From the sequence record NC_061448.1: DNA of 64,000 bases. The stretch is one strand, 5' to 3'. This document shows positions 22,072 through 63,461 of this stretch, in pieces. A program made the translations under genes and the position numbers. The notes under the pieces were generated by a model. That model saw only the letters and a program-made list of their open reading frames with translations, ran no database searches and was not told the origin of the DNA. The stretch's first letter is position 1, and each line of letters begins with the position of its first letter.

Positions 22072-23058
22072 TTAAAGTTTACGCAGACCTTTCTTGATAG
22101 CCGCGTTGACTTGCGCTGCTGTTGGGTCTTTCGACGCAAACAGATCAATGACGTTCTTGATTGAGTCCAGCTCACCCAGATGAATCTGGACGTTCTGCAC
22201 TTTCTTCAAGTGGTCAGCAACAAACGTCATCAGCCAGCCTTTCTGCTTCATAACGACAGCGACCTCAAGGTCCTTGTACGAGAAGGAGAACTTGTTGCCA
22301 GATGCGTGGAGCACTTTACCTGCACCGGGAATAGGTTCTACTGCACGAACGAAGTCCGGTGCATACTTCGTAGCGGTCTTAGTACGCAGTACAGAGTATG
22401 CCGGGTCGAATGTTTTCTGCGGAATCTTCGACTTCATTTTAGAGCCAGGAGTTCCGCCTGTTTGTTTCTGGTCTGGGTTCTGCGTCCACGTCAGTCCTTC
22501 GTCCAGACAGTTCTGACCGGTCATCGCTTCCTGAAGGATGACACGCTTGTCCTTACCTGTTTCAACGTTCTTGTCAGCTTCTGCTTCGGTCTTGAACGGA
22601 CCTTTGATGATAATGTCGTTCGCATGACGAGTGTGGTCAATGACGTACCACTTGTTGCGTTCGATCTTACCGTTCGCGTCCATGGTGCTGGCACGTACTG
22701 GACGAGTCGTCTTAGCAGGAGCGTTCTGCTGGATAGCGACAGGCTTGATCTTGATTGCACGAAGACCATTGATGGTAGCCACCAGCGTCTTCGCTTTGTA
22801 CAGGTTCTTCACGGCGGTAACGAGATTCTTACCGGCAGCTTTCTTCGCAAATGCAGTAGTCGCATCTGCATCGTTCAGCAGGTCGAGAACAGCAGACAGC
22901 TTTGCAGTGTCCAGCTCTTTGATTTTCACCAGCTCGTCAATCTTCTTGATCAGAACTTTAGCGTTCTTACCGAAAAGGATTTCAGCGTTGGCTACTTGCT
23001 TCTTGTTGGCAGCGGAGACTGATACCACCGTGCCTGACGGGAGAGTCATTTCGTACAT
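22072..23058 (-). CDS. Lys/Ala-rich hypothetical protein with N-terminal VVSVSAA motif (candidate internal head protein)
   Basis: AAGGA SD, strongly biased codons, own terminator. Confidence 0.6.
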   Translation of the reverse strand: MYEMTLPSGTVVSVSAANKKQVANAEILFGKNAKVLIKKIDELVKIKELDTAKLSAVLDLLNDADATTAFAKKAAGKNLVTAVKNLYKAKTLVATINGLRAIKIKPVAIQQNAPAKTTRPVRASTMDANGKIERNKWYVIDHTRHANDIIIKGPFKTEAEADKNVETGKDKRVILQEAMTGQNCLDEGLTWTQNPDQKQTGGTPGSKMKSKIPQKTFDPAYSVLRTKTATKYAPDFVRAVEPIPGAGKVLHASGNKFSFSYKDLEVAVVMKQKGWLMTFVADHLKKVQNVQIHLGELDSIKNVIDLFASKDPTAAQVNAAIKKGLRKL

Positions 23059-23067
23059 TGCTGTTCC

Positions 23068-23619
23068 TTATCGTTTCTTGGTCCAGTTGTTTTGTTTCAC
23101 TGGCGCAGGTGAAGTGTTTTCTTCGTTGATTTCTTCCTCGTCGTCTTCTTCGAGGTCTTCTTCAACTTCCTGTTCAGGCTCTGGTTCAGCTTCTTTCACA
23201 GGTGCAGGGACGATCACAGACGCAGCCAGTGGCGATTGAGACACAGTATTTACAGTAGCGACAGGCTCTGCTTCTGCGGCCTTACGCGCTTCTGCTACTT
23301 CACCTACAGCGTGTGCGTGAATCACATCAACAGTCAGCAGCGCACCCTTCTCTTTCAGGATTGCATCTGCTTTCTCTTGATCCCACTGGTCCCAGATAAT
23401 GTCCAGAGTCTTATAGCCCCAGTTCATGCCCTTAGGCAGTTTACCGCGACCGTTGAAAGGCAGACCGTTCGAAGGGGTAGCTGGCTCGAACTCGTCCATC
23501 ATTTCCCACTTACGTTTTGCCTCGATACACTTCGGGCCCCACACGCCATCGCAAGCTCCGTCGTACAGACCGAGCATAGTCATGATGACTTGCAGCTTCT
23601 GGTAGAATTTATTCAGCAT
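23068..23619 (-). CDS. Peptidoglycan-binding (PG_binding_1-like) protein with acidic C-terminal tail
   Basis: LQVIMTMLGLYDGACDGVWGPKCIEA matches the PG_binding_1 pattern; E/D-rich tail. Confidence 0.6.
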   Translation of the reverse strand: MLNKFYQKLQVIMTMLGLYDGACDGVWGPKCIEAKRKWEMMDEFEPATPSNGLPFNGRGKLPKGMNWGYKTLDIIWDQWDQEKADAILKEKGALLTVDVIHAHAVGEVAEARKAAEAEPVATVNTVSQSPLAASVIVPAPVKEAEPEPEQEVEEDLEEDDEEEINEENTSPAPVKQNNWTKKR

Positions 23620-23634
23620 GGTGAATCCTCTAAC

Positions 23635-23662
23635 AAAGGAGGGGCCGAAGCCCCTTACCTTT
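23635..23662 (-). terminator. Probable terminator after the SNF2 gene
   Basis: AGGGGC-TTCG-GCCCCT hairpin followed by CCTTTGTT. Confidence 0.6.
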
Positions 23663-26600
23663 TAGACTGATTTGTTTTTCGACGCGGTCAGTTTCAACTT
23701 GTCGATGCCTTGAATCGCTTTCTTGATGTTCGTGATGGTGTAGCCAGCTTTCACAATCTTGTTGATTCGAGCTTTCGCACCAGCAGCGTTTTTCACGAAG
23801 CCGATCCACATACCCGGTGACAGGTCGAACGTACCGAACTTACGAGTGTTAGGCACTTTCGTTCCGACGAAGCGTTTCATCTGCGGGTTCGTTTTCAGGT
23901 CGAACATGATACGCAGACGATCTTCCATCACCATTGGATATGCCTTGACGTGTTTCTTGTCAGTGGCAGACTTGTGACGCACAAGGAAGAACTGCTGCAA
24001 CTGCGACTGCAACTTGACGGCCAGTTTGTAGTTGAAGCCCATTCGAGAATGCGTTTCGTCGAAGCTATCCTGAATGAACTCCAGACGCTTCTCGGACATG
24101 CGGTCGAATGACAGTTTCTTACCTTCGATGAAGTCGAGCATTGCAACGAAGTCATCGTAGTACGCACAGTCGTAATAGACGTAATCACCAAACTCGGTGA
24201 AGTCGAAACCTTTCAGAGCTTTCGCATCAGGGTCAGTCGCGTCAGCATACAGAGCAACGAATCCGTTGTACACTGTAGGCGTCAGCTCCAGAGCCATGTC
24301 TGCGCCGCCCATATCGTCGAGAGGCACGATGGTTCCCGGCTTAGCACGACGAGTAGTGTTGTCCAACACTTTCAGTTCAGACGGCTTACGGCGACGAACT
24401 TTCTTGGCAGCTTCTTCAACACCTTCGTTGATAGGCTTACCTTCTTCCTTGTTCGCAACACGCTTGGCAACGCGAGCAGCTTTACGCGCTTGCGCTTCCA
24501 CCTTCTTCTCTGTCTCTTTCGTGTCGGCAGTCTGCGTTTCGTCGAGAACGGTGTCTTCAACTTCAACACGGTTCGCTTCGGCAGTAGCACGTTTGCGGTC
24601 TTTCTCATTCGCCCACGGCTTACGCTGTTCGAAGAAACGTTTCAGATCGTTCTTGTCTACCTTAGTAGCAATGTGAACTTTCGTCGCAGGAACTGCAACG
24701 GTCTCACCAGTGCCAGCCAGACGAATACGAACGGTACTGATAGGGCTATCGCCACGCAGCTTACCATCAACCATACGCACAGTCACAGACACGACAACAC
24801 CGTTACCGAACTCAGTCACGACAGGTGCACGATTCAGAGAATCTTTCAGCCCTTCGCCGCTTGTGAAGTTACGGTTACGTGCCCAGTCCAGAATACGCTC
24901 AGTGCCCCAGCCATTACGATCAGGGATCTTCTGGTTGGCAACGAGAGGCGTCTGCTCCATAACACGGAAGTCATTCAGAGCCGGAGTTGACGGCAGCGCT
25001 TGCATTGCTGCAATCGTTGTCTTACGCATCTCTTGGAACTCTTGTGACTCGATTTCGTTCAGGTCGCGCTTCGCATGGAAGTACGGCAGGAAGTCATCCA
25101 TCGTGTTGTTATCGATCAGCAGCTTCGCGCTCATTTTGATCGGGTCCAGTTTGTACTGGTCGAGTGCTTCGTAGCGCTGGTTGCCTTTCTCGTCGAAGCG
25201 AGTCTTCTCAAGGGTCTTCCACATCAGACGAGCGACCTTACCAACTTCCAAGGTCTTGTTCGTCATAACCCAGTCGATGAACACAACTTCACGAGCCATG
25301 TCGCCCGGCTTACCGTTCTCGTCCAACTTCGCAGCAGCAACGTCAGGACGGAAGATACGCGCAGTAGACTGATCGTAAGTACCCGGTGACCACGGAGTAT
25401 CGCAGCGGATGATACGGCTACCCATCTGCATGTTGTGGCCTTCGGAGATTGCCTGTTCGTTCGCAATCAGAATCTGAACGTTGTTGTCAGTTTTGAATGC
25501 GTCGAGGTTAGCGTCTTTGTTCTGGCCGAGCTTACCAACTTCACCGTGATACACCACAGCAACTTTCTTATAGTTAGCTGGCAGTGCATTATAGATGGCG
25601 TTAGCAGCACGAACATAACGTGTGAAGACAATCAGTTTACCCTGCACTTCCGGCTTCCAGTATTCTGGATCATCAGGCGGCGGAGTCATCGAAGGCGGCA
25701 GGTCTTGACGTTGGAACTCGTCGGACTGCTTACGCGCCAGATACTTCTGTCCGTTGTAGACAGCGATATCCAGTTCACGAGGCTGCACACCCGGTTTCCA
25801 TTCGAAGATCTGTTGCTCTTTGATCATCGGGTCACGCTCAGGCTGCACTTCGAAGTGCTTCTTGATGCGGTCGATGATGGTCAGTACCTTAGCAGAAACG
25901 AAGTTGGTAACACCAGCAGCTTCAAACGTCATACGTGCAACGTCATCGCCCATTGGGTCAGTCAGCATCATCTCCATACGCTGGAAGTACATGTTCAGGT
26001 CAGCGTTACCCGCCAGCAGTGCGCCGAGGTCATCGCCTTCTTCGATTTCGTCTTCGTCAATGTCAGACGTGCTATCGCTTTCAGCACCACCAGCATCTTC
26101 GTCGTCGTCATCGTTAGAGCCGCCAGATTTCTTCTTGGCGTTCTTAGCCGCTTCGTCCAACTTCTCCAGCACTTCTGCGTACATTGCGTTGTACACTTCT
26201 TGGTGCAGAGCAGAGTTAGGAACTGACGGGTCATCGATCTCAACCTGAATGAAGGTATCAATCGGGTTAGGCAGCATGAATGCCCAGTGCTTACGCTTGA
26301 ACGAGATGAACGCTGTATGGTTTGCCATACGTGAGTGCGCACGACGAATCATTTCAATGTCGTCTTTCGCGCCGTCATATGCAACGTCCAGTGAGTCACC
26401 GAACATAGCAGGCGTCATCAGTGCAGCCTGACCAACAATGTCACGCACACGGTCAGTTACCAGCGTACCAGTAGCGATACGAGCATAGCGAACAGACGGA
26501 GCAGTGAAGACCGCTTTGGTGTTGAAGTGAACCTGAGAACCAGATTGACCACCAGAGAAGTTTTTCACTTTGTGCGATTCATCGAGCAGCACATAGCTGA

Positions 26601-29514
26601 ACTTGAAGCGGTTAACGAACTCTACAGCACCACGCACACGAACACGCACACCGCCAATATCAACGTTGAACGTACCAGTTTGCAAATAGCTCAGGCCGAC
26701 GATGAAGATTGTGTTACGAGGTGACTGAGAGATCACATCGTACATACGTTCTTCGCCCCACGTGTTCACGGTGTCAGCAGTGATAGGCACTGCGTTCCAA
26801 CCGTTAACGATTTTGTGGAGGTCGTCACACCAGTTCGCTACGAGGTTAGACGGGCAGATGATCAGAGGACGAATTGTTTCTTCACCCAGGTCATCAAGCT
26901 CTTTGATAAGAGCAGCAATATCGGTCAGGCCAATAATCGTCTTACCACCGCCAGGCGCGATAAAGATTGTTGCGTAACGCGGACGACGACGCAGAGTTTT
27001 GTGCGCTTCGACCTGATGCGGCAGTAACGCTGCACCGTCTTTCAGACCCGGAATACGGATATCGTCAATCGTGATACCGCTGTCAGGTTTCAGGCGTTCG
27101 ATCTCAGTCTCAGCCGCTTCGAAAATCTCAAGAGACTTAGGAATCACATCGCTGTACATCGTAGCGAACGGCAGGATGATCTGTTGCAGACGACCAGAAC
27201 CCGGAGCTTCTTCGGTCTCAATCAGAGAACTGAACAGCTTCTTACGGTCAGCACGTACAAGCGCCTGAGTCATTTCACGATACACAGCACCACCGAAGTA
27301 GTTGTTGAGTCGTGCCATATCAGACAGCTTAGACTTCTCACCCATCACGAAGTAGTGAGTGTGCGACGGCAGAGATTCGGTTGCAGCCGTAATGCTTCCC
27401 ATCTCAGACAGAGAGGTTGCAATCAGGTTAGAGCCTCGCAGACCAGCAGCATCGTTCAGCACACGAATCATGATACGAATCATGGTCAGTGCAGGACGCT
27501 CGTTCGACATGTCAGGCACAGAGAAGTCATTAGCAATGAGGTTCTCGTACAGACCGCGATCCATCGGGCTTTCTTCAAGGGACGCGTTCTCTGCATCCAT
27601 GCCGATTGCTTTACGTGCGTTTTCCACCAGCGTTTTCAGGTCAGGAACTTGTTTGCTCTTGAGCATGAACTCGTAGGTCTGACACGTCTGCGCAATGATG
27701 TTCAGCAGCTCAGGCAGGTTAGAACCTTCGGTGGAGTTGTACTTGATCGTGGACTCACTCACACTCTCAATCAACTTACCGTTACCGGATTCAACTTTAG
27801 CAGCTTCAACCATCGTGTCGAATGACGGACGATACAGTGCCATGCCACCAGACGCTTGGTTGTGGTAGATGTTGCCAACCACGTTCGACACAGAACGGAA
27901 GTTCGGTGCTTCACCCGGCTCTGCGAAGTCGTAGCCTAAAGCATCAGCAACGTCGAGCGAGTTCGGTGCTTTCATACCGACAGTACGCGTTTCGTTAACT
28001 GCCAGCCCGCCACCATTAGAGGTGTTTACGATCAGCGAGAAGTCAGGGTCGATACCGATACACACGTCGCTGAAACGAGACAGAGACTTGGCTTTCGCCT
28101 GAATGTCACGGTCGAAGTCCAGATTGTTGTTCTGGATAGCGAACATGTTGGTACGCAGCGTGTCGTGCTCAGTAGACAGCGGAATGCCTTTCTCGAACAG
28201 GTCTTCAAGCACACCGTTCAATGAGGTTTCGTAGGTCTTCACCATCTCAACGTCAATGTCTTCACGACGAGGCAGAATAGCCATCGTGCCGTTTGGCATG
28301 ATAGTCATACCATTCTCGTCTGCGACCACATCGTTCACGGCGTAACCGAACTTTTCACGCAGCTTCTTCAACTCAGGCAGAGAAGTCGCAGACGTTACAT
28401 AGCGCGGGATACGTGCAGCACGAGTGATACCAGTACGAGTAGAACCAGCAACACGGAAGTAATAGCTCGCCCAGCCCTGGAACCAACGATACAGACACAT
28501 GGTCTGCGTATCAGCACCCTGAGAGACATACTCAACCATCTCTTTCTCGAAGTTAACAATCAGACCGCCTTCAACGCGAACGTCGGTGGCCAGTGCTACT
28601 TCGTTGAAATCGACAGGAGTGTCGTGGCTAATCTTCATCGCCTGAATCTTACGATCAATCATCTGTTTCCCAGGGATTGAACGAATGCCGATAGTCATGA
28701 AGTCGCCCAGACCATCAACTACAGACTTATCCAGATTGCGGAACAGGTCAATGTCAATGTTGTGCATTGACGGGTGGATAGAACGCAGCGCAGCATTGTA
28801 CACAGACCAGTCTTTATCCAGAGGGATGCGGATCATCTTGGTGTCGAATGCGTTACTGTTGGTGCGCTCAACGCCGAAGATATCCTTGTACAGAGTCTTC
28901 GCTACACGGATTGCTTGTTGTGCAATGTCCGCGCTGTAAGTGCGCAGGTTAGCGCTTTCGAAGTTCGCATCGTTGTCAACGCGAGGACGGTCGCTACCCT
29001 GATTGTTCAGAACGTTGAAGTTACCGTTCGAAGCAAGTGGGCTGGTGGGGCACGGAGTACCAGACATGATAATGTCTTTACCGCCAGGGAAGCGCGTACT
29101 GTTTTCGATGATAGCACCAGAGGAAGAAGACAGGTGCTCGGCGAGAGCAGTCTTAATCTCACGGCTGAGCTTATCACCGTTCAGCATCATGTTAATCTTG
29201 AGCGTCGCCGCATCAACGTTGTTCTTAACACGCTTAACGAAATCTTCAGGCGCAACTTCCAGCATGTCCTCGAACTCTGCACCGTTGATAACGATGTAGT
29301 TGATCAAGTCGAACGCTGCATAGATGCGAGCTACGGTTGACGCGGTGAACACTGCGAGGGCTTCGTAGTTACGACGAGACTTCCCTGTAGCGTACATTTT
29401 CGACATTTTAGCGTCGAACTCGGGCGGCAACGGACGAATAGCAAGCGCCTGATTAAACGTATCGGCGATTTGCTGAGTCGCTGTTGCTGACACACTAATC
29501 ATCTGATTCATCAT
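23662..29514 (-). CDS. Giant SNF2-family ATPase/helicase (1950 aa)
   Basis: LLPHQ, APGGGKT, LLDESH, ATGT, SEGHNMQ, WSPGTYDQSTARIFR. About 820-aa unknown N-terminal extension and about 450-aa C-terminal extension. Confidence 0.9.
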   Translation of the reverse strand: MMNQMISVSATATQQIADTFNQALAIRPLPPEFDAKMSKMYATGKSRRNYEALAVFTASTVARIYAAFDLINYIVINGAEFEDMLEVAPEDFVKRVKNNVDAATLKINMMLNGDKLSREIKTALAEHLSSSSGAIIENSTRFPGGKDIIMSGTPCPTSPLASNGNFNVLNNQGSDRPRVDNDANFESANLRTYSADIAQQAIRVAKTLYKDIFGVERTNSNAFDTKMIRIPLDKDWSVYNAALRSIHPSMHNIDIDLFRNLDKSVVDGLGDFMTIGIRSIPGKQMIDRKIQAMKISHDTPVDFNEVALATDVRVEGGLIVNFEKEMVEYVSQGADTQTMCLYRWFQGWASYYFRVAGSTRTGITRAARIPRYVTSATSLPELKKLREKFGYAVNDVVADENGMTIMPNGTMAILPRREDIDVEMVKTYETSLNGVLEDLFEKGIPLSTEHDTLRTNMFAIQNNNLDFDRDIQAKAKSLSRFSDVCIGIDPDFSLIVNTSNGGGLAVNETRTVGMKAPNSLDVADALGYDFAEPGEAPNFRSVSNVVGNIYHNQASGGMALYRPSFDTMVEAAKVESGNGKLIESVSESTIKYNSTEGSNLPELLNIIAQTCQTYEFMLKSKQVPDLKTLVENARKAIGMDAENASLEESPMDRGLYENLIANDFSVPDMSNERPALTMIRIMIRVLNDAAGLRGSNLIATSLSEMGSITAATESLPSHTHYFVMGEKSKLSDMARLNNYFGGAVYREMTQALVRADRKKLFSSLIETEEAPGSGRLQQIILPFATMYSDVIPKSLEIFEAAETEIERLKPDSGITIDDIRIPGLKDGAALLPHQVEAHKTLRRRPRYATIFIAPGGGKTIIGLTDIAALIKELDDLGEETIRPLIICPSNLVANWCDDLHKIVNGWNAVPITADTVNTWGEERMYDVISQSPRNTIFIVGLSYLQTGTFNVDIGGVRVRVRGAVEFVNRFKFSYVLLDESHKVKNFSGGQSGSQVHFNTKAVFTAPSVRYARIATGTLVTDRVRDIVGQAALMTPAMFGDSLDVAYDGAKDDIEMIRRAHSRMANHTAFISFKRKHWAFMLPNPIDTFIQVEIDDPSVPNSALHQEVYNAMYAEVLEKLDEAAKNAKKKSGGSNDDDDEDAGGAESDSTSDIDEDEIEEGDDLGALLAGNADLNMYFQRMEMMLTDPMGDDVARMTFEAAGVTNFVSAKVLTIIDRIKKHFEVQPERDPMIKEQQIFEWKPGVQPRELDIAVYNGQKYLARKQSDEFQRQDLPPSMTPPPDDPEYWKPEVQGKLIVFTRYVRAANAIYNALPANYKKVAVVYHGEVGKLGQNKDANLDAFKTDNNVQILIANEQAISEGHNMQMGSRIIRCDTPWSPGTYDQSTARIFRPDVAAAKLDENGKPGDMAREVVFIDWVMTNKTLEVGKVARLMWKTLEKTRFDEKGNQRYEALDQYKLDPIKMSAKLLIDNNTMDDFLPYFHAKRDLNEIESQEFQEMRKTTIAAMQALPSTPALNDFRVMEQTPLVANQKIPDRNGWGTERILDWARNRNFTSGEGLKDSLNRAPVVTEFGNGVVVSVTVRMVDGKLRGDSPISTVRIRLAGTGETVAVPATKVHIATKVDKNDLKRFFEQRKPWANEKDRKRATAEANRVEVEDTVLDETQTADTKETEKKVEAQARKAARVAKRVANKEEGKPINEGVEEAAKKVRRRKPSELKVLDNTTRRAKPGTIVPLDDMGGADMALELTPTVYNGFVALYADATDPDAKALKGFDFTEFGDYVYYDCAYYDDFVAMLDFIEGKKLSFDRMSEKRLEFIQDSFDETHSRMGFNYKLAVKLQSQLQQFFLVRHKSATDKKHVKAYPMVMEDRLRIMFDLKTNPQMKRFVGTKVPNTRKFGTFDLSPGMWIGFVKNAAGAKARINKIVKAGYTITNIKKAIQGIDKLKLTASKNKSV

Positions 29515-34130: not shown

Positions 34131-35205
34131 TCAGATTGCGTAGCTGGTCGTTATACCCACCTTCAATAAGCGCTCGTGCCATTGCAACGTGGTTCGAGTT
34201 CGCTGTACGCACTACCTTAGCCTGATACTCAGGAACGTTCTGCATGTTCTGACTCAGGTTGTAGAAGTAACTGCGCACGAAGTTGGTTCGCTCAACGTTG
34301 CTTGCTTCCATGTCGCTTGTGTCTTGCGTAGGAGTCAGCAGCAGATAGAGCGCTGCAAGCAGTTCAGGACTTTGATCAATGACAGGCGATGCCAGCGAAG
34401 CAGCAATCTTCATCAGGCCCTTCGCAACAAAATCAACCACAGTCTTTTCGATGAACTCCGTACCGGCTTTACCTACGTTAGGCAGATACAGTCCAGGCAA
34501 GATGAAGATACAGAAGTAAAGAGGAAAGTCTTTACGCATCACGTCGGGGATAAGCATCTCCGAGTAGTCTTTCCAGATGTTGATATTGAAGTGCCATTCA
34601 TCGTAAGGCACAGTACGCATCAGGTTCGACACAGACAGGTCTTTCACGAGGTTCGCCTGCGATGCAAGATCGCGAGCGCTCTGCGAAGGAGCAAGGTTAG
34701 AACTCGACACAAGCTGAACGTAGTTGCGTGTCACAGCACCTACAGAGTTGTACACAACGTTCAACATCTCAACACCATTACCGTTCAGGCCAAAGATGAC
34801 AGAACGAGGAAGACCGATAGTGATGTACTCGTTATTGTTCTCGACACCCCACAGTCTCCAGTAGCGGCCACGACCAAGTTGAGTCATAGGCGGCGGGAGA
34901 ATACGATTAGCGCGAGGTTTCAGGCAGAACGTGAACGCAATGCCACTGTCAATCATGATCACTGAATCATCAGGACGATTCGAATAACCCATCGACATGT
35001 TGTTGTCAGTGCTGTACACGTTTACCAGAGTGAAGTTCAGAGCCTTGGTGAAAGGCATCTGCGCTTCAATCAAATAGCCGAGAACTTGACGAACGATAGT
35101 ATCAAGCACATAAGGAGAAGCGTTACGCATTTGATTCGGACGATACTGCCCGCTATACGTATTCTCCTTGAATGTGCGATCTACCTTGAAGTGCGTCAAC
35201 GCCAT
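34099..35205 (-). CDS. Hypothetical protein (368 aa)
   Basis: Long ORF coupled to its neighbours. Confidence 0.65.
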   Translation of the reverse strand: MALTHFKVDRTFKENTYSGQYRPNQMRNASPYVLDTIVRQVLGYLIEAQMPFTKALNFTLVNVYSTDNNMSMGYSNRPDDSVIMIDSGIAFTFCLKPRANRILPPPMTQLGRGRYWRLWGVENNNEYITIGLPRSVIFGLNGNGVEMLNVVYNSVGAVTRNYVQLVSSSNLAPSQSARDLASQANLVKDLSVSNLMRTVPYDEWHFNINIWKDYSEMLIPDVMRKDFPLYFCIFILPGLYLPNVGKAGTEFIEKTVVDFVAKGLMKIAASLASPVIDQSPELLAALYLLLTPTQDTSDMEASNVERTNFVRSYFYNLSQNMQNVPEYQAKVVRTANSNHVAMARALIEGGYNDQLRNLIEYLGLTKAD

Positions 35206-36494
35206 TACTTAACAGACTGTTTCAGCAGGCGTTTCTGTTGCGGGTTCAGGCCCATGACGTCTGCAATCTCGTCGATCTTACGCAGAGTCAGGACGCCCTT
35301 CGCAGTGCCACCGCTACCAGTCAGTGAGACTTTAACGAACTCACGACCGTTACGGCCAGTTACCATCTGATGCACGATGCTGTTCTTGCCGCCGCGACCA
35401 GCGCGAAGTGCGGTAGATGCCATGCCCAGGATTTCGGTAACAGCTTCTTTCTTCTCGGTAGGGCTGAGGCCCGGAGCGAGTCGAACGTACAGGCTGTCGT
35501 TCTGCACACGCACGTTGTCGAAGATTTCTTTCTTACGACCGCGAATGGTGTGTTGCTGATTGCCCAGCAGCGTCGTGTCACGCAGGTTCTGCGTTGAACG
35601 ATTGATAGGCTTACGCTCGCTGTAGTTCAAGAATCCGTCGAGAGCCATCAGGTGGTTGATGGTACGCTTCATCTCAGGAGCAGTTGCAATCTGACGACCC
35701 ATAGGGAATGAGCCAGGGACTTTCTCGTCAACGAGTGACGTCAGGAAGTTTTCGCTGATACCGCTTGCGACCGCGATCGTGGTAGACAGTACCAGAGCAT
35801 AGTTCGGGTAGTGCATACCGTCTGAGTTCACGAAGTTATCAATGAACACATAGGTCTGGAAGCAGATAGGGTCAGTGCCGGACGCGATGAAAGTACGAGT
35901 ACGAATCTTCGAATAGTCTTCTTTATTCAGAATCTTCGACAGGTAGTTAGCGATAGTCGCAGCCAGCTTGGTGTGTTCTTTAGGAGCGCCGTTCTTAACG
36001 TCGATGCTCATAAGTTTAACCAGTTTGGTCTGCTGATCTTTCGCCTGTGCGATAACGTTAAGCAGAGACTTCGCGGCGGTGTTCTGATCTTTGAACGCGC
36101 TGAAAGTTTTGCTGCTGAGAATCTGGTACGCAACAGACAGTTCACCGATTGCCTGACTGAGTTGACTCACCTGATTGTTGTACTGCGCTTTGTTGCGTAC
36201 ATCGGTGATGTCAATCTTAGACAGGTCGATAACCTGATTCAGGTCAATCGCTTTTGTCTGCTTGCCTTTGATGGAGCCTTCGATATCGGACAGCTCAATA
36301 GCTTTAGCGCTGACAGACAGAAGGTGCTTAGGGATAACGACGCTTTGTGCAGTCGCTACTACGCGGTCGAGCACGTTACGGAACTCTTTCGCTGTACGAG
36401 CACCGCGCAGGGCAGCCATGTTCCCAGAGCTATAGTCAACAGATGCGCTGATACTGCTAACTTCATTGTTTTTGGCAGTCTTAGCCATGATCAT
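35205..36494 (-). CDS. Hypothetical protein with N-terminal SSISAS motif (candidate head protein)
   Basis: GAGGA SD, TAATTT upstream, basic composition. Confidence 0.65.
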   Translation of the reverse strand: MIMAKTAKNNEVSSISASVDYSSGNMAALRGARTAKEFRNVLDRVVATAQSVVIPKHLLSVSAKAIELSDIEGSIKGKQTKAIDLNQVIDLSKIDITDVRNKAQYNNQVSQLSQAIGELSVAYQILSSKTFSAFKDQNTAAKSLLNVIAQAKDQQTKLVKLMSIDVKNGAPKEHTKLAATIANYLSKILNKEDYSKIRTRTFIASGTDPICFQTYVFIDNFVNSDGMHYPNYALVLSTTIAVASGISENFLTSLVDEKVPGSFPMGRQIATAPEMKRTINHLMALDGFLNYSERKPINRSTQNLRDTTLLGNQQHTIRGRKKEIFDNVRVQNDSLYVRLAPGLSPTEKKEAVTEILGMASTALRAGRGGKNSIVHQMVTGRNGREFVKVSLTGSGGTAKGVLTLRKIDEIADVMGLNPQQKRLLKQSVK

Positions 36495-36601
36495 CCTCTA
36501 CTGGGTCTAGTAATCATATCGAGTAAAAATTAGCGACTAAGGGCTGATTTACCCAACATAGTGTTCGTACTGACTTTACAAAATTTAGGGCATGTGAACG
36601 C

Positions 36602-37342: not shown

Positions 37343-37462
37343 GGTTGTATCCTCAAGTTACAATTGAACTTTCGTCCTGTGGACATTAAGTTTTGAAATC
37401 AGCATGTAAAAATTAGTATAATCCCTGAAACTTTTATCAGGAAATTTCCTAAATCTTTTTTT

Positions 37463-38565: not shown

Positions 38566-38574
38566 TATTTACAG
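38566..38574 (-). promoter_or_regulatory. CTGTAAATA motif upstream of sbcD
   Basis: Exact copy, 27 nt from the start. Confidence 0.65.
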
Positions 38575-39348: not shown

Positions 39349-39380
39349 AAAATGGGCAGCATACGCCACCCATTTATTTT
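39349..39380 (-). terminator. Terminator variant of the repeated hairpin
   Basis: AAATGGGTGGC-GTAT-GCTGCCCATTTTCATTTC on the minus strand. Confidence 0.7.
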
Positions 39381-41262
39381 ACTTCTTAGCTTTGAGTCGC
39401 GCTCTACGCGCTTTAGCTTCGACACGCATCTCGGCAACCTCTTCAAGAGCCTGAGCCAATGCAATCTCCAGTGCGCGATCACAAATAGCGTCAATGATTT
39501 GTTGAGGGTTCTCTTGTGTATCGAGAAGCAAATACAGAGGATGACCCAACTGAATTGCATCAGGGTACAATTCCTCACGCGCCTCTGCAATACACAAGTC
39601 ATCATCGAGGTGGTACAGAGCTACGTGCATCTCGGAGATCTTGAACTTGTATTTCTTATTCTCAAACATCGGACGAAGTTTATTGCGGAAGTCTGATCGT
39701 GTGTCGATTGCAATGTACTTGTAACCGGCAAACACTTTCTTCGCAGCACTGAAATAACGCTTGTCGATTATGGCCTCGTGTCGTTCCATGCTCGCTTGGT
39801 TAGCAGCAGGACAAGCAGGTGTCATGTTTGCTAACGAACCAATAGCAGGAGCCAGAACGTATTCAGCATACATGTTATTGCTTCCCATGTATTCTTCATC
39901 AACGTAACGCACCTGCACACCGCCAGTGTTAATGCGTGACGCATGGAACCAGAACATGCTCTCAGGATTCACGGAGTATTTAGCGAATGACCAAATCTGA
40001 GATAGCGCAGCAGGATAAGACCAGCGCGTCAGATCTTCGGTCTTCATATTGAACAGATCGACTTCATCGAAGTTAGCATCGAGGAAACTCTTACGCTGTG
40101 CTTGCGGTAGTCGGTCAATGAACATGTGCATCGCTCGCGTTCTTCCGGACAAGTGGCTCCAAAGTCTAGGCACAACAACATCATCTACACCGAACTTCTC
40201 AAATACGGTATCGAGAAGCCGACCGAAATCGTCATAATGCTTACCGCCCAACAAAGCAGCAACACAACGCACGTAGAACTTAGGCTGTCCCCATTTCTCT
40301 CGCGCAAACATCATAGCGAGCTGAGGATAACGATCCAGCGCGTCAACAACAATCTCTTCATTGTTTGAAGTACGCGGTGCGTCGATGATGCCACGAACAA
40401 ACCCATTAATATCGCCACGCAGCAACGGACTTTCTAGGTCATAGTTGAACTGAGTGCTACGCTGATCAGCATACAGCTTGCTACCAAGCTCATACATTCC
40501 CTTACGCTCGTTAGCAGCAATGAAAGGGTTGATATGTTCGTCCAACCAATCTTGCAGTACGTGAACGAAAGGCATCTTAGAATCAGGGTAGGCGTACTCG
40601 ACCAGATACAGCGCGTTCACTTTCTCTGAGCCCACGAAACGTTCAGACGCTTTAGCTTTTGTCTGCTGGAAGTAAGGCTTAGCGAGACAGCGACCAATAG
40701 GCTTGTTGATGTTTTTGTCAGACGGGTCAATCAGGTAAGCAATCAACGTACCACCAGCAATGTCTTGTTTGACAAACTTCTTATTCGAGCCTGTCTTCAA
40801 GTTCATGCAGCTCACCCACCCACGGTCAGTGGACATGCCAGCAATATCATACGGGTGCATTGAGATGCAGATAAGTTGACGGTTGCGTGTCGCATTGACC
40901 ATAGACTTACGATTCGGGTCCGAGTCAAACATCTTCTTGAGTTCGGGATTCTTTGACAGCACACGACCAATCTTAACGATGCGACCATGTGAGTCTTTGC
41001 CTGTACCTGCGAGGTAGTCAACGAGGACAATATCCTTTTCCATCAGCGCGTCAACGATTTGAATCGGAGGCTTGATGTTCTGTGCGAGATTGTTGACTAC
41101 GCGGTCCGTCTTCGCGTCGATGTAGATGCGCATGGCCTTGTGGCCTTTCTTGCCGCTAATCTTCTCAAACAGATTCAGCAGCGCAATGTTAGGCTTCCAC
41201 CCCTTTCTATATTTGCGATACAACGAGGGTGGGAGAGCAGACAGACTGACTTGTATTTCCAT
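39379..41262 (-). CDS. Hypothetical protein with MEIQVSLSA N-terminus (about 627 aa)
   Basis: Start moved to the ATG at 41262 (the track's start overlaps the SLOG gene). Contains a compact conserved-looking block ISMHPYDIAGMSTDRGWVSCMNL...GTLIAYLI. Confidence 0.7.
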   Translation of the reverse strand: MEIQVSLSALPPSLYRKYRKGWKPNIALLNLFEKISGKKGHKAMRIYIDAKTDRVVNNLAQNIKPPIQIVDALMEKDIVLVDYLAGTGKDSHGRIVKIGRVLSKNPELKKMFDSDPNRKSMVNATRNRQLICISMHPYDIAGMSTDRGWVSCMNLKTGSNKKFVKQDIAGGTLIAYLIDPSDKNINKPIGRCLAKPYFQQTKAKASERFVGSEKVNALYLVEYAYPDSKMPFVHVLQDWLDEHINPFIAANERKGMYELGSKLYADQRSTQFNYDLESPLLRGDINGFVRGIIDAPRTSNNEEIVVDALDRYPQLAMMFAREKWGQPKFYVRCVAALLGGKHYDDFGRLLDTVFEKFGVDDVVVPRLWSHLSGRTRAMHMFIDRLPQAQRKSFLDANFDEVDLFNMKTEDLTRWSYPAALSQIWSFAKYSVNPESMFWFHASRINTGGVQVRYVDEEYMGSNNMYAEYVLAPAIGSLANMTPACPAANQASMERHEAIIDKRYFSAAKKVFAGYKYIAIDTRSDFRNKLRPMFENKKYKFKISEMHVALYHLDDDLCIAEAREELYPDAIQLGHPLYLLLDTQENPQQIIDAICDRALEIALAQALEEVAEMRVEAKARRARLKAKK

Positions 41263-41320
41263 GGGTGATCTCTGTGTTCGGGTGATGGTAAAAATTAGCG
41301 TAGAAATGACAAACGCCCCG

Positions 41321-44211: not shown

Positions 44212-44721
44212 TTACTCCTTAATCATCTTGACTCGCGTATGATCAAAGATGCCGAAGGTAGGCACGTCATGATGCTCACCTTCGTTACCCTTAATAGAAT
44301 CATAACCAGCAAGTTTTAGGATTTTGCTGATCTCAGTATACTCGTCCCACCACATGTACACTCGCTTGTGTTGATTAGCAGGTATGTGTTTGTTCAGAGC
44401 ATCCAGACGACCAACGAGCGTAAGCGCTTCATCTTTGCCGACCAGATGTAACTGGAAAGCCTCCATGATAAGTTGCTTAACGCGTCTATAAATCTCAGCG
44501 AACCGTACTTCCGTCCACAGAGAACGGAACTTCAGGCTTGCATATCTGCCTGGGTCCGCATGAAACTTGTAGAGGCGCCCGTCCTCCGCATACTTCTCAG
44601 CATACGCACGATCAGGGGTTACCCAAGTCATGTGTTGCTTCTTAGCATGTTCATCTGACCAGTCTTCTGCAAGACCGCGATAGTAGATTGTGGGCGCACT
44701 CAGGCTAACGAAGATCTGCAA
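44212..44721 (-). CDS. ADP-ribosyltransferase-fold protein (ART-PolyVal-like) with MQIFVSLSA N-terminus
   Basis: YYRG...TWVTPDRAYAEKYA...GRLY...LAGYDSI...FGIFD pattern; TTG start. Confidence 0.55.
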   Translation of the reverse strand: MQIFVSLSAPTIYYRGLAEDWSDEHAKKQHMTWVTPDRAYAEKYAEDGRLYKFHADPGRYASLKFRSLWTEVRFAEIYRRVKQLIMEAFQLHLVGKDEALTLVGRLDALNKHIPANQHKRVYMWWDEYTEISKILKLAGYDSIKGNEGEHHDVPTFGIFDHTRVKMIKE

Positions 44722-44724: not shown

Positions 44725-45762
44725 TTACTTGCTCAGACGTTTGAACTTAGCACCGGTAGCGCTGTAAGTAACGCTGAGGACGCCAGGGATTTCAAAGCCG
44801 TCTTTCTTACGAACGACTGGAATCTTTTTGTCTTCGAAGTGATGACGCATCTCGGTAACAACGACACCAGCACCGTTACCCAGTGACTTACCTTCGGAGT
44901 TGGTGATCGTGCCGCTTGCTTTGGTGAAGTCTGCTTTAGCGCCTACAGTTCTCAGAATGGCCTTAGAGCGCTTCTGAACTTTGTCGCCCAGCTTCGCGTC
45001 TGCACGAGCGCTCAGTTCGATCTCGCTGTTGTTCATCCACTCTGCGTTCTTTTTGTCTGCGCGTTTTTTCAGACCAGCATCGGCTTTACCGCCAAGCTGT
45101 TCTTCGCGTTTCTTTTTCAGAGCTTTTGCTTTAGCAGGGGTGTGTGCACCGCCAACGCCACCGTCAGTCATGCGTGCCTTGGTGCGTTTGATAGCAGCAG
45201 CGTTGCCTGGCTTCTTGGAGACTTTGACGCCGATCTGCTCGAACGTTTCAGGCTTCATGAACTTAGGCTTGAACGTACCGCGCTTTCCAGTTACACCGAA
45301 CTCAGTCAGTTTGATTGCACGAATAGCTTTCAGAGACTTAGCCAGACCTGGACCTGACGCAACAATATCAGTAGCAGAGAACGGAAGATTCAAACCACCC
45401 AGACCTACTTTCTTCGCAATTTTATTAGCAGTGCGAAGCGCGATCTTGGCGCGACGAATCTCTGTAGCAGATTTGGTCTTTTCTGCTTTATAAGTTTCTT
45501 TCAGGGCAGTCTTACGAGGACCCTTAGGAGTTTGATTGGCTTTAGTGAAAGCAGTCGCAGCCTTCACTCGGGCATTGAGACCGTCAACCGCAGCTTTCTT
45601 CGCGTATTTCAGAGAGTTCACAATCTCCTGCAAGTCTGATTTCTTGTCTGATGGGATCACCAGAGTCTGAGCACCGCCAATCTTAGCAACTTTGTAGCTA
45701 GGTTTCTTAGCAGCAGACTCAGATACAACAGCCTGTTCGATATTGATTTTGATAAGTGCCAT
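44725..45762 (-). CDS. Lys/Ala-rich basic protein with N-terminal VVSESAA motif (candidate internal head protein)
   Basis: Very basic; N-terminus resembles that of 46378..46716. Confidence 0.65.
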   Translation of the reverse strand: MALIKINIEQAVVSESAAKKPSYKVAKIGGAQTLVIPSDKKSDLQEIVNSLKYAKKAAVDGLNARVKAATAFTKANQTPKGPRKTALKETYKAEKTKSATEIRRAKIALRTANKIAKKVGLGGLNLPFSATDIVASGPGLAKSLKAIRAIKLTEFGVTGKRGTFKPKFMKPETFEQIGVKVSKKPGNAAAIKRTKARMTDGGVGGAHTPAKAKALKKKREEQLGGKADAGLKKRADKKNAEWMNNSEIELSARADAKLGDKVQKRSKAILRTVGAKADFTKASGTITNSEGKSLGNGAGVVVTEMRHHFEDKKIPVVRKKDGFEIPGVLSVTYSATGAKFKRLSK

Positions 45763-45773: not shown

Positions 45774-46376
45774 TTACACCAGAGGTCGGCCTGGCGTATC
45801 GAAGTTTTTACCGGCTGAGTAATCACCCAGCGCCTGATATAAAGAGTTACGCAACATCTGATTGATGATATCCGAGTTGTGTGCCGAAGCGTCTTTGAAA
45901 GCCACCTCGATCGATTCTGTTCTTGGATTCACTACAGCGTAACGTAACGGAGCGATCTGCTGCGCACCACACCACGCGTCAACTTTGATCTGCAAGTCAG
46001 GCGTGAGAGGAATGCGGAAGTCAGAGAGCTGAAACACAACACTCTGAATTGGAGGAGGAGATGACTGCGATGGAACAGGTCCGTCACCCAGTTTCTCCAT
46101 AGTCATAGCGGCAGAATACACAGAGGAGAATTTCGTTCTCAGTGTATTTGTCTCTACGAGCTTATAGCTATTCGATGCAAGCCCCTGACGACGGAGCTTG
46201 GCGATCTTAACAACGTAATCACCAGAGTCGTCAGCGGCGAATGCAACGTAAGCGTAGACAGCGAAGCCAGATTCTTCTCGAAGCAGCTTATGATCGAGGG
46301 CACGGGCACCCAAGATACGATTAAACTGAATCAAGTCCATCTGGACTCCGCGTGAAAGCGATACGTAGATCTGCAT
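45774..46376 (-). CDS. Hypothetical protein with MQIYVSLS N-terminus
   Basis: Coupled to the upstream gene. Confidence 0.6.
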   Translation of the reverse strand: MQIYVSLSRGVQMDLIQFNRILGARALDHKLLREESGFAVYAYVAFAADDSGDYVVKIAKLRRQGLASNSYKLVETNTLRTKFSSVYSAAMTMEKLGDGPVPSQSSPPPIQSVVFQLSDFRIPLTPDLQIKVDAWCGAQQIAPLRYAVVNPRTESIEVAFKDASAHNSDIINQMLRNSLYQALGDYSAGKNFDTPGRPLV

Positions 46377-46377: not shown

Positions 46378-46716
46378 TTAGCGCAGGCGAGCGAGCGCCT
46401 TTTTAGCGTCTGCCAGAGTCAGTTCGTTTGTGTCGTCATCATCGAACTCAGGCTCCAAACGAATGTCGATGCCAGAGATATTGTAGCCGATCTCTTCGTC
46501 TTCGTCTTTGGTGATCATGCCGAAGCGCGCCGTACCATTTTTGTAGCTGATGAAGCGGAAATCAACAATGTCGTTTGCGCTACCCAGATCAGACGGCATA
46601 CCATCGTCCAGAAGTTCAAAGAACTCTTTCTTGGTCAGCTTTCCAAACACAGCATTGATAGCAGCAGCGGACTGTGACTTAACAGCTTCTTCCAGATTCA
46701 GTTTGATAAGAGACAT
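46378..46716 (-). CDS. Hypothetical acidic protein with N-terminal MSLIKLNLEEAVKSQSAA
   Basis: N-terminus aligns with MALIKINIEQAVVSESAA of 44725..45762. Confidence 0.65.
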   Translation of the reverse strand: MSLIKLNLEEAVKSQSAAAINAVFGKLTKKEFFELLDDGMPSDLGSANDIVDFRFISYKNGTARFGMITKDEDEEIGYNISGIDIRLEPEFDDDDTNELTLADAKKALARLR

Positions 46717-53649: not shown

Positions 53650-53685
53650 AAAAAGAAGGGCCACCAGCAATGGCAGCCCCGCTTT
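53650..53685 (-). terminator. Probable terminator
   Basis: Imperfect GC-rich hairpin followed by TTCTTTTT on the minus strand. Confidence 0.5.
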
Positions 53686-54134
53686 CAATAACGTCTTGGT
53701 TTCTTCGGCTTTTTAGGGCGTACTGATTTAGGACGCTTGATACGCTGTAGCGCTTTACGTGCCTCAGCGATTTGAGTAGACAGTGCTGCGCGTTGCTTCT
53801 TCGTCGCATCAGTATCTTGGTCCGTGCCTTTCAGTTTCTCAAGGCGATTCCACTCTTTGACCAAGCGATCCACGACAGCAGCACGAGAGACACGTTGCTG
53901 GTTAGTGCGCACAATATCCTGCTGCGTCTTGACCGAGCGTTGACTGTCTAACACTTTGGTTCGTGCAGACTCAATACCTTTCGTGTCACCCTCAGACTGT
54001 TTCTCGTTGAGCGCTTTACGGGCAGCGTTGTTTCTGCGCTGTGCTCCCTTGAGATCGTCACGCGAGTTCTCTAAACTGACTTTCGTTTCTTCGAGCGGGC
54101 TGGAACGCACACTCAAGCTAACCATGATTTCCAT
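53685..54134 (-). CDS. Basic coiled-coil protein with MEIMVSLSV N-terminus
   Basis: GGAG SD before ATG at 54134; the track's start lies inside a terminator. Confidence 0.65.
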   Translation of the reverse strand: MEIMVSLSVRSSPLEETKVSLENSRDDLKGAQRRNNAARKALNEKQSEGDTKGIESARTKVLDSQRSVKTQQDIVRTNQQRVSRAAVVDRLVKEWNRLEKLKGTDQDTDATKKQRAALSTQIAEARKALQRIKRPKSVRPKKPKKPRRY

Positions 54135-54150: not shown

Positions 54151-54177
54151 AAAAAGGGCAGCCGAAGCCACCCTTTT
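54151..54177 (-). terminator. Repeated UUCG-loop terminator, copy 4
   Basis: AAAAGGGTGGC-TTCG-GCTGCCCTTTTTCATTTTT on the minus strand. Confidence 0.8.
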
Positions 54178-54264: not shown

Positions 54265-54801
54265 TCATGCTGATTGAAGATCGACAACTTCCTCGTCTTC
54301 TATGTCAGCGGCAGACCACGAACGAAGCACGGACGCATTGCCGCGATTGCCTGTCAGCATTGACTTAACTGCTGGTTTAGCATCGCGTTCTGCATAGTGG
54401 TCGATAAGAGCTTTGTCATTAGCGAACCACATAATGGAGTGACCACCTTTAGGGCAGATCAAGAATTGAGTTGGACGCTGCGGTACATTGAGCGTCATGT
54501 ATAAATCGCCGACGCCGTTAGGACCCATCATAGGCATCGGCTTCATAACTTGTGAGAAGTCATGCGCGTCTTTAAGACGAACATCACCCAGTAACCAGAC
54601 AGCACCCTCTTCACCTTCACGCACAGCAGACAACGTGCCTTTGCGCGTAGTGATAGACCCGAATACGTCTTGATCGAATCGTGCAAGGCCAAAGATAAGC
54701 GATGCGAGTTTCTTCAAATCAGGTGTGGTACATGGACTGTCGATTTTCGCCATGCCCTCAGACCCAACTGTAATCTTCGAGAGTGATACAAAGATTTCCA
54801 T
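54265..54801 (-). CDS. Hypothetical protein with MEIFVSLSK N-terminus
   Basis: Stand-alone gene, TAATTT upstream. Confidence 0.65.
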   Translation of the reverse strand: MEIFVSLSKITVGSEGMAKIDSPCTTPDLKKLASLIFGLARFDQDVFGSITTRKGTLSAVREGEEGAVWLLGDVRLKDAHDFSQVMKPMPMMGPNGVGDLYMTLNVPQRPTQFLICPKGGHSIMWFANDKALIDHYAERDAKPAVKSMLTGNRGNASVLRSWSAADIEDEEVVDLQSA

Positions 54802-59490: not shown

Positions 59491-59498
59491 AACGACCT

Positions 59499-60023: not shown

Positions 60024-60030
60024 AGTAACC

Positions 60031-60222: not shown

Positions 60223-60262
60223 TCGTTATTCCTCTATGTTTGATTGCTGTTAGTTTACAGTA

Positions 60263-60787: not shown

Positions 60788-60790
60788 ACT

Positions 60791-62455: not shown

Positions 62456-62461
62456 CTCTGA

Positions 62462-62560
62462 ATCCCGTACAGCTACAGCGGAGCTACTACAGGACAGCTG
62501 GGCTACAGCGGGCTTGCTACAACGCTCGTGGTACGCTTGAACATTACTACTACAGGTACA
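62462..62560. repeat. Iteron-like CTAC/GCTACAG direct repeats
   Basis: GCTACAGCGG at 62472 and 62502; CTACTACAGG at 62484 and 62547; further CTAC cores. Confidence 0.55.
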
Positions 62561-62740
62561 TCTTTAGGCGGCACGTTTTGAGATAGCTAAAATCGAGAAG
62601 ATCGCAGCTTTAACAGCCCGAACATATACCCTCAGGCGCTCTATCAAGCAAAGTAGCAGGTCAATTTAGGTCGTCTAAACCGTGTAAATTTTCCGACAAA
62701 AGCAGTACATTTTTCACCCAAATGCCCTGTTTTGTCACTA

Positions 62741-62785
62741 AAAATGAGGATAAACCGAATAAATTCAAAGGTTTATCCCCTTTTC
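62741..62785 (-). terminator. Probable terminator after the 62802 gene
   Basis: GGATAAACC...GGTTTATCC inverted repeat followed by TCATTTTT on the minus strand. Confidence 0.6.
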
Positions 62786-62801
62786 GAAACGAAAAATCAG
62801 A

Positions 62802-63461
62802 TTATTTTTTCTGTGAAACGCGTTTTCCGAGCTTAACGCCGATTTGAGTCAGGATGCGTTTGACAGTCTCGCCGTCGTGTTCTGCCATTGCAGAAGCTAA
62901 ACGTTCGCCCTGTTCGCGCGATAGCTCTGGCATAACCATTTTAAGCATCTGCGAACGCATCTTAGCAGACTTCGAGCGCCCTTTTGAGACAGACACGCCC
63001 TCGTTCGCAGTCAACGCACTACTAATCGCTTTCTGCACACGACGATCACCGAAAATGTCGCCGAATACATCACCGAACAGGTCTTTGAACGACAGTCCGC
63101 CGCTCATAATGTCGTTCTTAGTGAAACGAACAGGCTGTCCGAGTGCATTCACTTTATCGCAATGCACGGACTCAACTTCATTCGTTGTGCGTCCACCAGC
63201 ACGGAAGTTCTCGTCAGGGCGTGACGCTTTGCCCTCTGCGCCTGGCTTAGTGTTGCCGTTACGCAGATCTGCATCGCCTTCGACAGCTTTATCAGGGTCA
63301 AACATGTCGTCAGCTTTCGCGCTCTGATTCGCGTCGAACGGAATCTTACCTGTCAGCTTGTTTGGATCTGGCCAGCTATCAGGAATGTCAGACGCAGGCT
63401 GAGGCTTGTTTGTCATATCGCCGTTCGCTTCACCGCTCAAGCTAATCGTAATACGTGCCAT
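62802..63461 (-). CDS. Hypothetical protein with MARITISLSG N-terminus (candidate head protein)
   Basis: AGGAG SD before ATG at 63461; low-complexity Pro/Asp/Ala N-terminal half. Confidence 0.65.
   Translation of the reverse strand: MARITISLSGEANGDMTNKPQPASDIPDSWPDPNKLTGKIPFDANQSAKADDMFDPDKAVEGDADLRNGNTKPGAEGKASRPDENFRAGGRTTNEVESVHCDKVNALGQPVRFTKNDIMSGGLSFKDLFGDVFGDIFGDRRVQKAISSALTANEGVSVSKGRSKSAKMRSQMLKMVMPELSREQGERLASAMAEHDGETVKRILTQIGVKLGKRVSQKK

Follow-up and report, generated by a model that had tools for sequence, protein, structure and literature searches.

Short N-terminal peptides on unrelated proteins of Erwinia phage pEa_SNUABM_1 as candidate head-packaging leaders trimmed by a maturation protease

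The stretch of DNA analyzed here (hereinafter the window; 64,000 nucleotides in all) matches Erwinia phage pEa_SNUABM_1 (genus Alexandravirus; NC_061448.1, 266,939 bp) at 100% identity and spans positions 124001-188000 of that record; a window position is thus the record position minus 124,000. This phage has been placed with Lu11, PaBG, AD1, Y3 and Yoloswag in a group of jumbo myoviruses (PMC7412058), and the family of its major capsid protein (MCP) also includes phiRSL1-like phages. The minus strand carries every gene of the window, among them those for DNA polymerase A (gp174), the SNF2-type helicase gp177, a head-tail connector (gp183), an endolysin and many hypothetical proteins. Our subject is a short peptide (hereinafter the tag) with which several of these proteins begin, with the consensus M-[E/Q]-I-x-V-S-L-S, in which hydrophobic residues alternate at positions 3, 5 and 7 and small residues occupy positions 6 and 8. 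We found no description of it in the literature on Alexandravirus, AD1, Y3, Lu11/PaBG, the tag strings themselves, phiRSL1 processing or prohead-protease specificity, and the Matilda preprint holds no processing data.

Six-frame translation of the window yields exactly five copies of [EQ]-I-x-V-S-L-S, each directly preceded by a start codon (the upper coordinate of the respective gene in Table 1). The back-translated degenerate DNA pattern matched five times versus 0.26 expected, and none of 100 dinucleotide-preserving shuffles reached five matches. The more permissive [VILM]-S-x-S occurs in the first 28 residues of 12 of the 69 window proteins, versus 2.8% of internal 28-residue windows (binomial p = 4e-7). 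The serine codons of the tag come from both families (AGC/AGT/TCG/TCA/TCT) and the leucine codons vary (CTG/CTT/TTG/CTC); hence, the tag is selected as a peptide and not as DNA, as the initial annotation of this stretch had held. The eleven N-termini quoted there all lie on the minus strand at the coordinates it gave, and its description of the bodies as unrelated is borne out by pairwise BLASTP comparisons of 15 tagged proteins from residue 21 onward, which returned no match at E <= 0.01. Scanning the rest of the genome piece by piece with the degenerate pattern and a regular expression enlarged the set by gp233 (MEIYVSLSQ), gp242 (MEILVSLSH), the Nudix protein gp121 (MMINVSLSA), gp134 (MLILLSESA) and gp150 (MVLSVSASY), giving at least 10 strict-type N-termini and six looser ones in the whole genome. 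For gp195, the TTG start is fixed by an in-frame stop two codons upstream. For gp197, the true start is very likely the ATG at 46376 that opens the tag, one base past the gp198 stop; RefSeq begins the gene 36 nt further downstream, at an internal methionine (46340). A second leader, M-x-LIK-x-N-x-E-x-AV-x-S-x-S↓AA (16-18 residues; here and below the arrow marks the predicted cleavage point), is common to gp196 and gp198, which have no other likeness.

Table 1. Tagged genes of the window, followed by other features mentioned in the text. Coordinates are window positions unless given as record (NC_061448.1) or locus positions.
Feature	Length (residues)	Coordinates (strand)	Leader or site, with position	Remarks
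gp189	627	39379..41262 (-)	strict tag MEIQVSLS, 41239-41262	followed by conserved core starting ALPPSLYRKYRKGW; member of widespread candidate cargo family
gp195	169	44212..44721 (-)	strict tag MQIFVSLS, 44698-44721	TTG start
gp197	200	45774..46376 (-)	strict tag MQIYVSLS, 46353-46376	
gp209	149	53685..54134 (-)	strict tag MEIMVSLS, 54111-54134	
gp210	178	54265..54801 (-)	strict tag MEIFVSLS, 54778-54801	
gp221	219	62802..63461 (-)	variant leader MARITISLS↓G, 63435-63461	
gp177	1950	23662..29514 (-)	variant leader MMNQMISVS↓A, 29488-29514	SNF2-type helicase
gp175	328	22072..23058 (-)	N-proximal site ...GTVVSVS↓AA, 23014-23058	
gp196	345	44725..45762 (-)	long leader MALIKINIEQAVVSES↓AA, 45715-45762	
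gp198	112	46378..46716 (-)	long leader MSLIKLNLEEAVKSQS↓AA, 46669-46716	
gp185	429	35205..36494 (-)	...NNEVSSIS↓AS, 36447-36494	weakest candidate
gp143		record 109774-110907; L004 9974-11107		KMPT-N domain and HELAH motif
gp134		record 101194-101868; L004 1394-2068	tag variant MLILLSES↓A	KMPT-N domain
Terminator-like hairpins		54152-54177, 53657-53680 (-)		directly before and after gp209
CTAATTT[TC][TA]A sites		41289-41298, 37407-37416, 36524-36533 (-); record 109747, 118895, 188611		promoter-like
gp188, gp191, gp193, gp200, gp201	about 250-295	38569-39330, 41849-42715, 43131-43991, 47326-48171, 48203-49087 (-)	N-terminus MQY[LIH]	full-length paralogues

The tag behaves as a modular addition to otherwise independent proteins. 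In gp121, a Pfam NUDIX domain begins at residue 21; the PaBG homologue starts with MAVRKQSG, which corresponds to ...KKPRKQSG at about residues 17-22 of the Erwinia protein and thus aligns past its leader, so the PaBG protein lacks one. In an AlphaFold2 (AF2) model of the gp189 N-terminal domain (predicted local distance difference test score, pLDDT, 77), residues 1-7 are unstructured and lie outside the fold with pLDDT below 50. The core of the gp189 family begins A-L-x-P-S-x-Y-R, and the homologues in Atu_ph07 and many metagenomic contigs have the same core behind other leaders. Most leaders of the family have 8 residues and directly precede this core, with endings of the form SxS (14 distinct N-termini), AxA (7-8) or [IL]xE (14-16). 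Orthologues of gp189 begin with MEIVVSLS (Yoloswag), MEIEVSLS (JA29) and MRIQLAVA (Lu11, followed by AVPLSIARPY), those of gp209 with MEILISLS (Yoloswag) and MQVLISLS (JA29), and those of gp233 (itself MEIYVSLS) with MEIIVSIS or MHVLISLS; the tag is thus kept across genera while its position 4 and the bodies diverge. The gp210 orthologue begins MQIVFSLS in JA29, and that of Yoloswag (gp201; L015 20007) is untagged and starts with MSGLIVKN; single candidate cargo genes can therefore lose or gain tags. Among the variant leaders, the gp221 orthologue of Yoloswag begins MKLKINLSES, the gp177 and gp175 orthologues of JA29 show MQIFSTS↓AA and ...KVDSVS↓AT, and the gp196-type leader of JA29 is MKVTLDLSAEIQSTS↓AAA; the gp185 orthologues have ...VINSIS↓TS (Yoloswag) and ...EAQLS↓AS (JA29), the latter without serine at P3. 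Hidden paralogy or a shared N-terminal domain is ruled out by the dissimilar bodies, the unrelated domains after the tag and its unstructured state in the AF2 model. The gp189 family itself is widespread in large phages, often as two or three tandem paralogues, and its conserved domain carries an invariant H-P-Y-D...M-S-T-x-R-x-W-x-S-C-M signature; this domain matches no Pfam family and has no significant fold match in the PDB, where we recovered weak GNAT-like matches only (E > 0.1).

The small-x-small ending of the tag recurs in two further proteins. One is gp142, a very acidic scaffold-like protein encoded between the protease and the MCP and annotated as an 'ATPase', which contains 23 S-x-S motifs versus 7.4 expected (z about 6); its JA29 homologue has 27 versus 11.3. 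The homologues from Lu11 and PaBG show an excess of A-x-A (31 versus 16.3 and 27 versus 13, respectively) and no enrichment of S-x-S, just as A-x-A is not enriched in the gp142 and JA29 proteins; the mixed forms S-x-A and A-x-S are at most weakly enriched in these homologues (S-x-A z about 2.5 in gp142). The pattern [ILVA].E is not enriched in gp142-family scaffold proteins: tag, scaffold and MCP sites end in serine, or in alanine in relatives. Aligned scaffold sites switch type in place, with VQSQS↓A, FQSES↓S and VAVA↓S at one position and ESQS↓G, ASES↓S, RATA↓S and EATA↓G at a second. The other of the two is the MCP (gp140), which contains ...GELVHSTS↓AANPL, a site ending at residue 68 of 365 (19%). 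We predict this to be the boundary of the MCP propeptide; in PaBG, maturation shortens the MCP by about 20% of its mass (PMC7412058). MCP sites read VHSTS↓A, VHSHS↓G or EVSES↓H in phages with S-x-S tags (S-type), QVATA↓S, QMATA↓S or QIATA↓A in those with A-x-A tags (A-type) and VFASA↓E in most phiRSL1-like contigs, with QVLKA↓E in phiRSL1 itself.

We examined this covariation in Lu11 and in metagenomic relatives. In Lu11, at least 13 neighboring genes begin MKIQLAVA, MKIQLALA or MKIMLATA, a set in which the gp189 orthologue (MRIQLAVA) and an annotated topoisomerase I (MNVHIAVA) are counted. A scan of IMG/VR with an alignment of the gp189 family recovered 75 loci, and unbiased clustering of the N-termini encoded in such loci separated contigs with S-type tags from others with A-type tags (MEMMLALA, MKIQIAIA and others). 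In the 17 loci whose gp189 leader ends in SxS, the gene strand encodes 67 tags of S-type and 2 of A-type, versus 1 and 3 on the opposite strand taken as control; the 9 loci with an AxA leader encode 87 A-type and 2 S-type tags; and the 13 loci with an xE leader encode 1 and 0, some of them having their own shared leaders that end in glutamate. A second scan with the protease recovered 57 loci, in which the scaffold-like protein is enriched in S-x-S in every S-type genome (z = 5.2-6.3) and in A-x-A in every A-type genome (z = 3.8-7.0); this agreement of scaffold and tag includes eleven contigs whose tag type was known from the gp189 scan. The change from S-x-S to A-x-A between lineages thus takes in tags, scaffold sites and the predicted MCP site alike. 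The replacement of serine by alanine in relatives, together with the mixed serine codon families and varying leucine codons, also rules out an mRNA or DNA element as the conserved entity. Other recurrent N-termini specific to single lineages emerged from the IMG/VR loci (MxFKSFITE, MRLKSFQEY, MKYKEFY, MxxIKIPASV and MQMLAVK in L054, L081-L083, L077, L038 and L052), which suggests that lineage-specific address tags are common and discoverable by N-terminus clustering. In a further locus (L110, positions 8685-15027; IMG/VR 3300033997_000092), six genes directly downstream of the protease open with a tag variant of 10 residues (MKIKVFVSES↓A, MKINVMISES↓A, MKVLVSLNS↓A), in which the beta-strand-like part and the S-x-S part are separate, as in the leader of gp196 and gp198.

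A candidate enzyme for these sites is gp144, which has no Pfam match and is annotated in PHROG as a head maturation protease. An AF2 model built from an IMG/VR copy of the sequence (pLDDT 81; predicted template modeling score, pTM, 0.80) has the T4 prohead protease gp21 (5JBL) as its sole credible PDB match (probability 0.91, E = 0.02; next-best <= 0.06). His124 and Ser181 of gp144 are invariant in 25 homologues, and its own N-terminus reads MTQSVKSES↓F. SPN3US gp245, a member of the same family, prefers V-A-x-E↓S, i.e., valine at P4, alanine at P3, glutamate at P1 and serine at P1' (PMC10052503); the sites described here, V-S-x-S↓A and L/V-A-x-A↓S, follow the same grammar except at P1. With a modeled fold like that of T4 gp21 and herpesvirus assemblin, gp144 is the likeliest candidate for the enzyme acting on the tags.

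The published virion proteome of PaBG provides a link to the particle. Its structural proteins include gp202, a 221 kDa band (PMC7412058, Table 1) that begins MGSLFTLNSLS↓AA; its size, the neighboring PolA gene (synteny) and a tblastn match (E = 5e-175) identify it as the gp177 orthologue. Another virion protein, gp83 (PMC7412058), begins MLIKINLLEAVAAKA, a leader of the gp196/gp198 type; we rejected gp83 as a homologue of the gp196 body because the two cannot be aligned beyond the leader, and likewise PaBG gp191 as a homologue of gp186, there being no body homology. The tail-module proteins gp257, gp261 and gp263 of the PaBG virion are untagged.

Taken together, we consider it probable that the tags are head-packaging leaders that a protease trims. 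During prohead assembly, the label would bring its protein into the scaffold or core, and its V-S-L-S end would serve as a small-x-small cleavage site for the head maturation protease, which would also fragment the acidic gp142 at sites of this type and strip about the first 68 residues from the MCP (...VHSTS↓AA). The label would thereby be removed and the mature cargo would remain in the capsid, some of it presumably entering the cell with the DNA. The predicted cargo comprises the Nudix hydrolase, the SNF2 helicase, the gp189-family protein and several acidic or basic ORFans, among others; in relatives, co-evolution with the protease would have given the whole substrate set the form A-x-A (Lu11-like) or [I/L]-x-E (T4-like). 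The initial annotation had likewise proposed an S-x-S-type capsid-targeting or maturation signal akin to the capsid-targeting sequence (CTS) of T4, and this gains support from the S-x-S excess in the scaffold-like protein, the MCP site, the switching between serine and alanine, the [I/L]-x-E leaders, the gp21 fold and PaBG gp202. Its suggestion of an ADP-ribosyltransferase-like enzyme among the cargo finds no counterpart among the tagged proteins in Pfam searches and in a fold search with the gp189 domain. Its statement that replication proteins lack the tag applies to the core replisome but not to DNA enzymes generally, since the SNF2 helicase and the annotated topoisomerase I of Lu11 and PaBG are tagged.

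Several points weigh against this interpretation. From the sequences we infer the packaging of strictly tagged proteins, the cleavage after residue 8, the acting protease and the injection. At P1', the tags show a range of residues (A, R, V, K, Q, H, Y), whereas A, S, G or T predominate there in scaffold and MCP sites. The tagged gp233 and gp242 lie among early/middle-type genes. Further, the serine/alanine covariation may amount to few independent events because the S-type phages may form one clade, and the fold match between gp144 and gp21 is moderate (E = 0.02, target-normalized template modeling score = 0.50). Lastly, a second peptidase, gp143, adjoins gp144 in every S-type genome and in no A-type genome examined, so that either of the two may act on the S-x-S sites.

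This last point gives rise to an alternative in which the sites are still head-maturation sites and the tag still marks head substrates, but the S-x-S enzyme is the HExxH metallopeptidase gp143, acting alone or as a second protease. Encoded directly after gp144, between the gp21-like protease and the scaffold-like gene, gp143 combines a KMPT-N domain (E = 2e-28) with the HExxH motif HELAH. Its homologues directly follow the protease in all S-type genomes, and none was found within 8 kb in the A-type and phiRSL1-like genomes examined; L110, a more distant locus called S-type from its leaders alone, has a related peptidase domain, and gp134, encoded between tail-tube paralogues, is a second KMPT-N protein and is itself tagged. 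Nevertheless, it is the gp21-like protease and not gp143 that is conserved over S-type, A-type and phiRSL1-like phages, the site grammar (hydrophobic P4, small P3, small P1') is that of gp21-family enzymes, and the link of gp143 to S-type genomes may reflect shared ancestry alone. We regard this alternative as unlikely: if the tags are protease-trimmed packaging leaders, gp144 is probably the enzyme and gp143 a distinctly weaker contender. Candidate substrates for either enzyme include the peptides MEIFVSLSKITV and GELVHSTSAANPL.

Less probable still is that the leader is a removable propeptide only, which keeps an enzyme inactive or is trimmed for stability, with packaging set elsewhere in the protein. 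It is true that small-x-small covariation speaks for recognition by a protease and not directly for targeting. However, any substrate of a prohead protease must have entered the prohead beforehand, since that is where the enzyme works; the bodies share no other candidate packaging signal, and the conservation of positions 2-5 (E/Q, I, V), which precede the minimal S-x-S, goes well past the demands of scaffold and MCP sites. We give little credence to a third possibility, namely that the leader stays in place as a docking strand or directs its protein to another destination or process, such as the membrane, a replication factory or degradation. Its alternating hydrophobic residues would fit beta-strand addition, and gp233 and gp242 lie outside the structural modules, but neither the switch from serine to alanine in step with scaffold and MCP nor the [I/L]-x-E ending at the same position in T4-like lineages would then be explained. 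A Sec signal peptide obeying the A-x-A rule of signal peptidase I, which has a charged n-region and some 10-15 hydrophobic core residues ahead of its small-x-small site, was specifically rejected: with 8 residues the leader is too short, its position 2 is often acidic, and the motif recurs inside the acidic scaffold-like protein, where sites cannot be those of signal peptidase. Finally, that the shared N-terminus is no signal at all (chance, a relic of gene duplication or an mRNA-level translation element) is hardly credible, for although several tagged genes lack a clear Shine-Dalgarno sequence and gp195/gp196 and gp197/gp198 look like a duplicated gene pair, it runs counter to the excess of matches over expectation, the use of both serine codon families, the dissimilar bodies with unrelated domains (Nudix, KMPT-N, SNF2) and the conservation of the tag across genera while position 4 and the bodies diverge.

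The arrangement proposed here, a packaging leader trimmed within the head, is of a kind already known. In T4, the internal proteins and Alt reach the core by means of N-terminal leaders of 10-20 residues, the CTS, which gp21 subsequently removes (PMC5694885, summarizing Mullaney and Black 1996). As in T4, a short N-terminal peptide on unrelated proteins ends in what we predict to be the motif of the phage's own gp21-family protease, the same motif would cut the scaffold or core and the MCP propeptide, and the tagged genes lie in variable clusters. By analogy, then, the pEa_SNUABM_1 tag would be a CTS-like element that differs from the T4 CTS in its sequence, its length of 8 residues, its P1 residue (serine, or alanine in Lu11-like phages, versus glutamate in T4), the phages that carry it (Alexandravirus, Lu11 and PaBG) and its predicted cargo, which includes large enzymes (the 1950-residue SNF2 helicase, the Nudix protein and the annotated topoisomerase I of Lu11/PaBG). 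In phiKZ, 201phi2-1 and SPN3US, the propeptides of head and ejection proteins are cleaved at S/A/G-x-E (PMC5694885, PMC10052503). Processing by a gp21-like protease, valine at P4, a small P3 residue and serine or alanine at P1' are common to these phages and to the scheme proposed here, and identical N-termini of phiKZ/SPN3US-type paralogues are thought to be CTS-like; their propeptides, however, mostly exceed 100 residues and end in glutamate, whereas the leaders here have 8 (or 16) and end in serine or alanine.

The maturation and release sites of herpesvirus assemblin have the form (V/L/I)-x-A↓S. With alanine as small P1 residue and serine at P1', and cut by an enzyme of the same superfamily, these closely resemble the sites L-A-V-A↓S and V-A-T-A↓S of Lu11 type; unlike the tags, they lie in the scaffold and in the protease itself and are not N-terminal labels on cargo. 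Homology between the folds of assemblin and phage prohead proteases has been described (Cheng et al. 2004, cited in PMC10052503). As for the cargo, if gp177 is packaged as we propose, phage P1 offers a descriptive parallel, in which the head likewise takes up a helicase-type enzyme of very large size through information in the N-terminus. In the Dar anti-restriction system of that phage, the N-terminus of DarB, a giant helicase-methyltransferase, steers the protein into capsids; to our knowledge, no short consensus tag common to the Dar cargo has been described.

If the tags are packaging leaders, a testable class of capsid-packaged, probably injected cargo emerges, to which this phage contributes about 16 hypothetical proteins and its cultured and metagenomic relatives hundreds. 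This class would include the Nudix hydrolase, the 220 kDa SNF2 helicase, the annotated topoisomerase I of Lu11/PaBG and acidic ORFans that possibly act against host defenses. The same premise predicts a small-x-small specificity for an uncharacterized branch of the gp21/assemblin proteases along with maturation sites in MCP and scaffold, and would furnish a natural three-way example (glutamate, serine and alanine at P1) of a protease co-evolving with all its substrates, as well as a candidate tag, very short in length, with which jumbo-phage capsids could be loaded with proteins. Going further, we tentatively suggest, with a confidence that falls a little short of even, that the 8-residue label is a programmable system in a broad clade of large phages having gp21-like head proteases, in which the P1 specificity has switched among glutamate, serine and alanine while MCP, scaffold and a fast-turnover cargo of injected enzymes and ORFans were rewritten in step; in the S-type branch, the metallo-type peptidase gp143 may have joined the maturation machinery as a second enzyme. 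Were this so, the tag alone would predict the packaged proteome of each phage and offer a portable handle for foreign proteins. A more immediate gain is the correction of at least one gene start (gp197).

Some features of the surrounding DNA may be added. Terminator-like hairpins lie directly before and after gp209, and hairpin-plus-TGGAG arrangements like that of gp209 precede gp134, gp210 and gp242, which gives several tagged genes the appearance of self-contained cassettes. A promoter-like motif, CTAATTT[TC][TA]A, occurs 11-74 nt upstream of gp189, gp186, gp185, the scaffold-like gp142, gp150 and gp222; six of its 7 genome-wide matches are so placed, and since the motif was derived from four of these, the evidence it offers for co-regulation is weak and partly circular. 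The window also encodes five paralogues (gp188, gp191, gp193, gp200 and gp201) that share the N-terminus MQY[LIH] and, unlike the tagged set, are homologous over their full length (BLASTP E down to 1e-17); because the open reading frames of gp188 and gp193 have longer upstream extensions, their true starts are probably the internal MQY.

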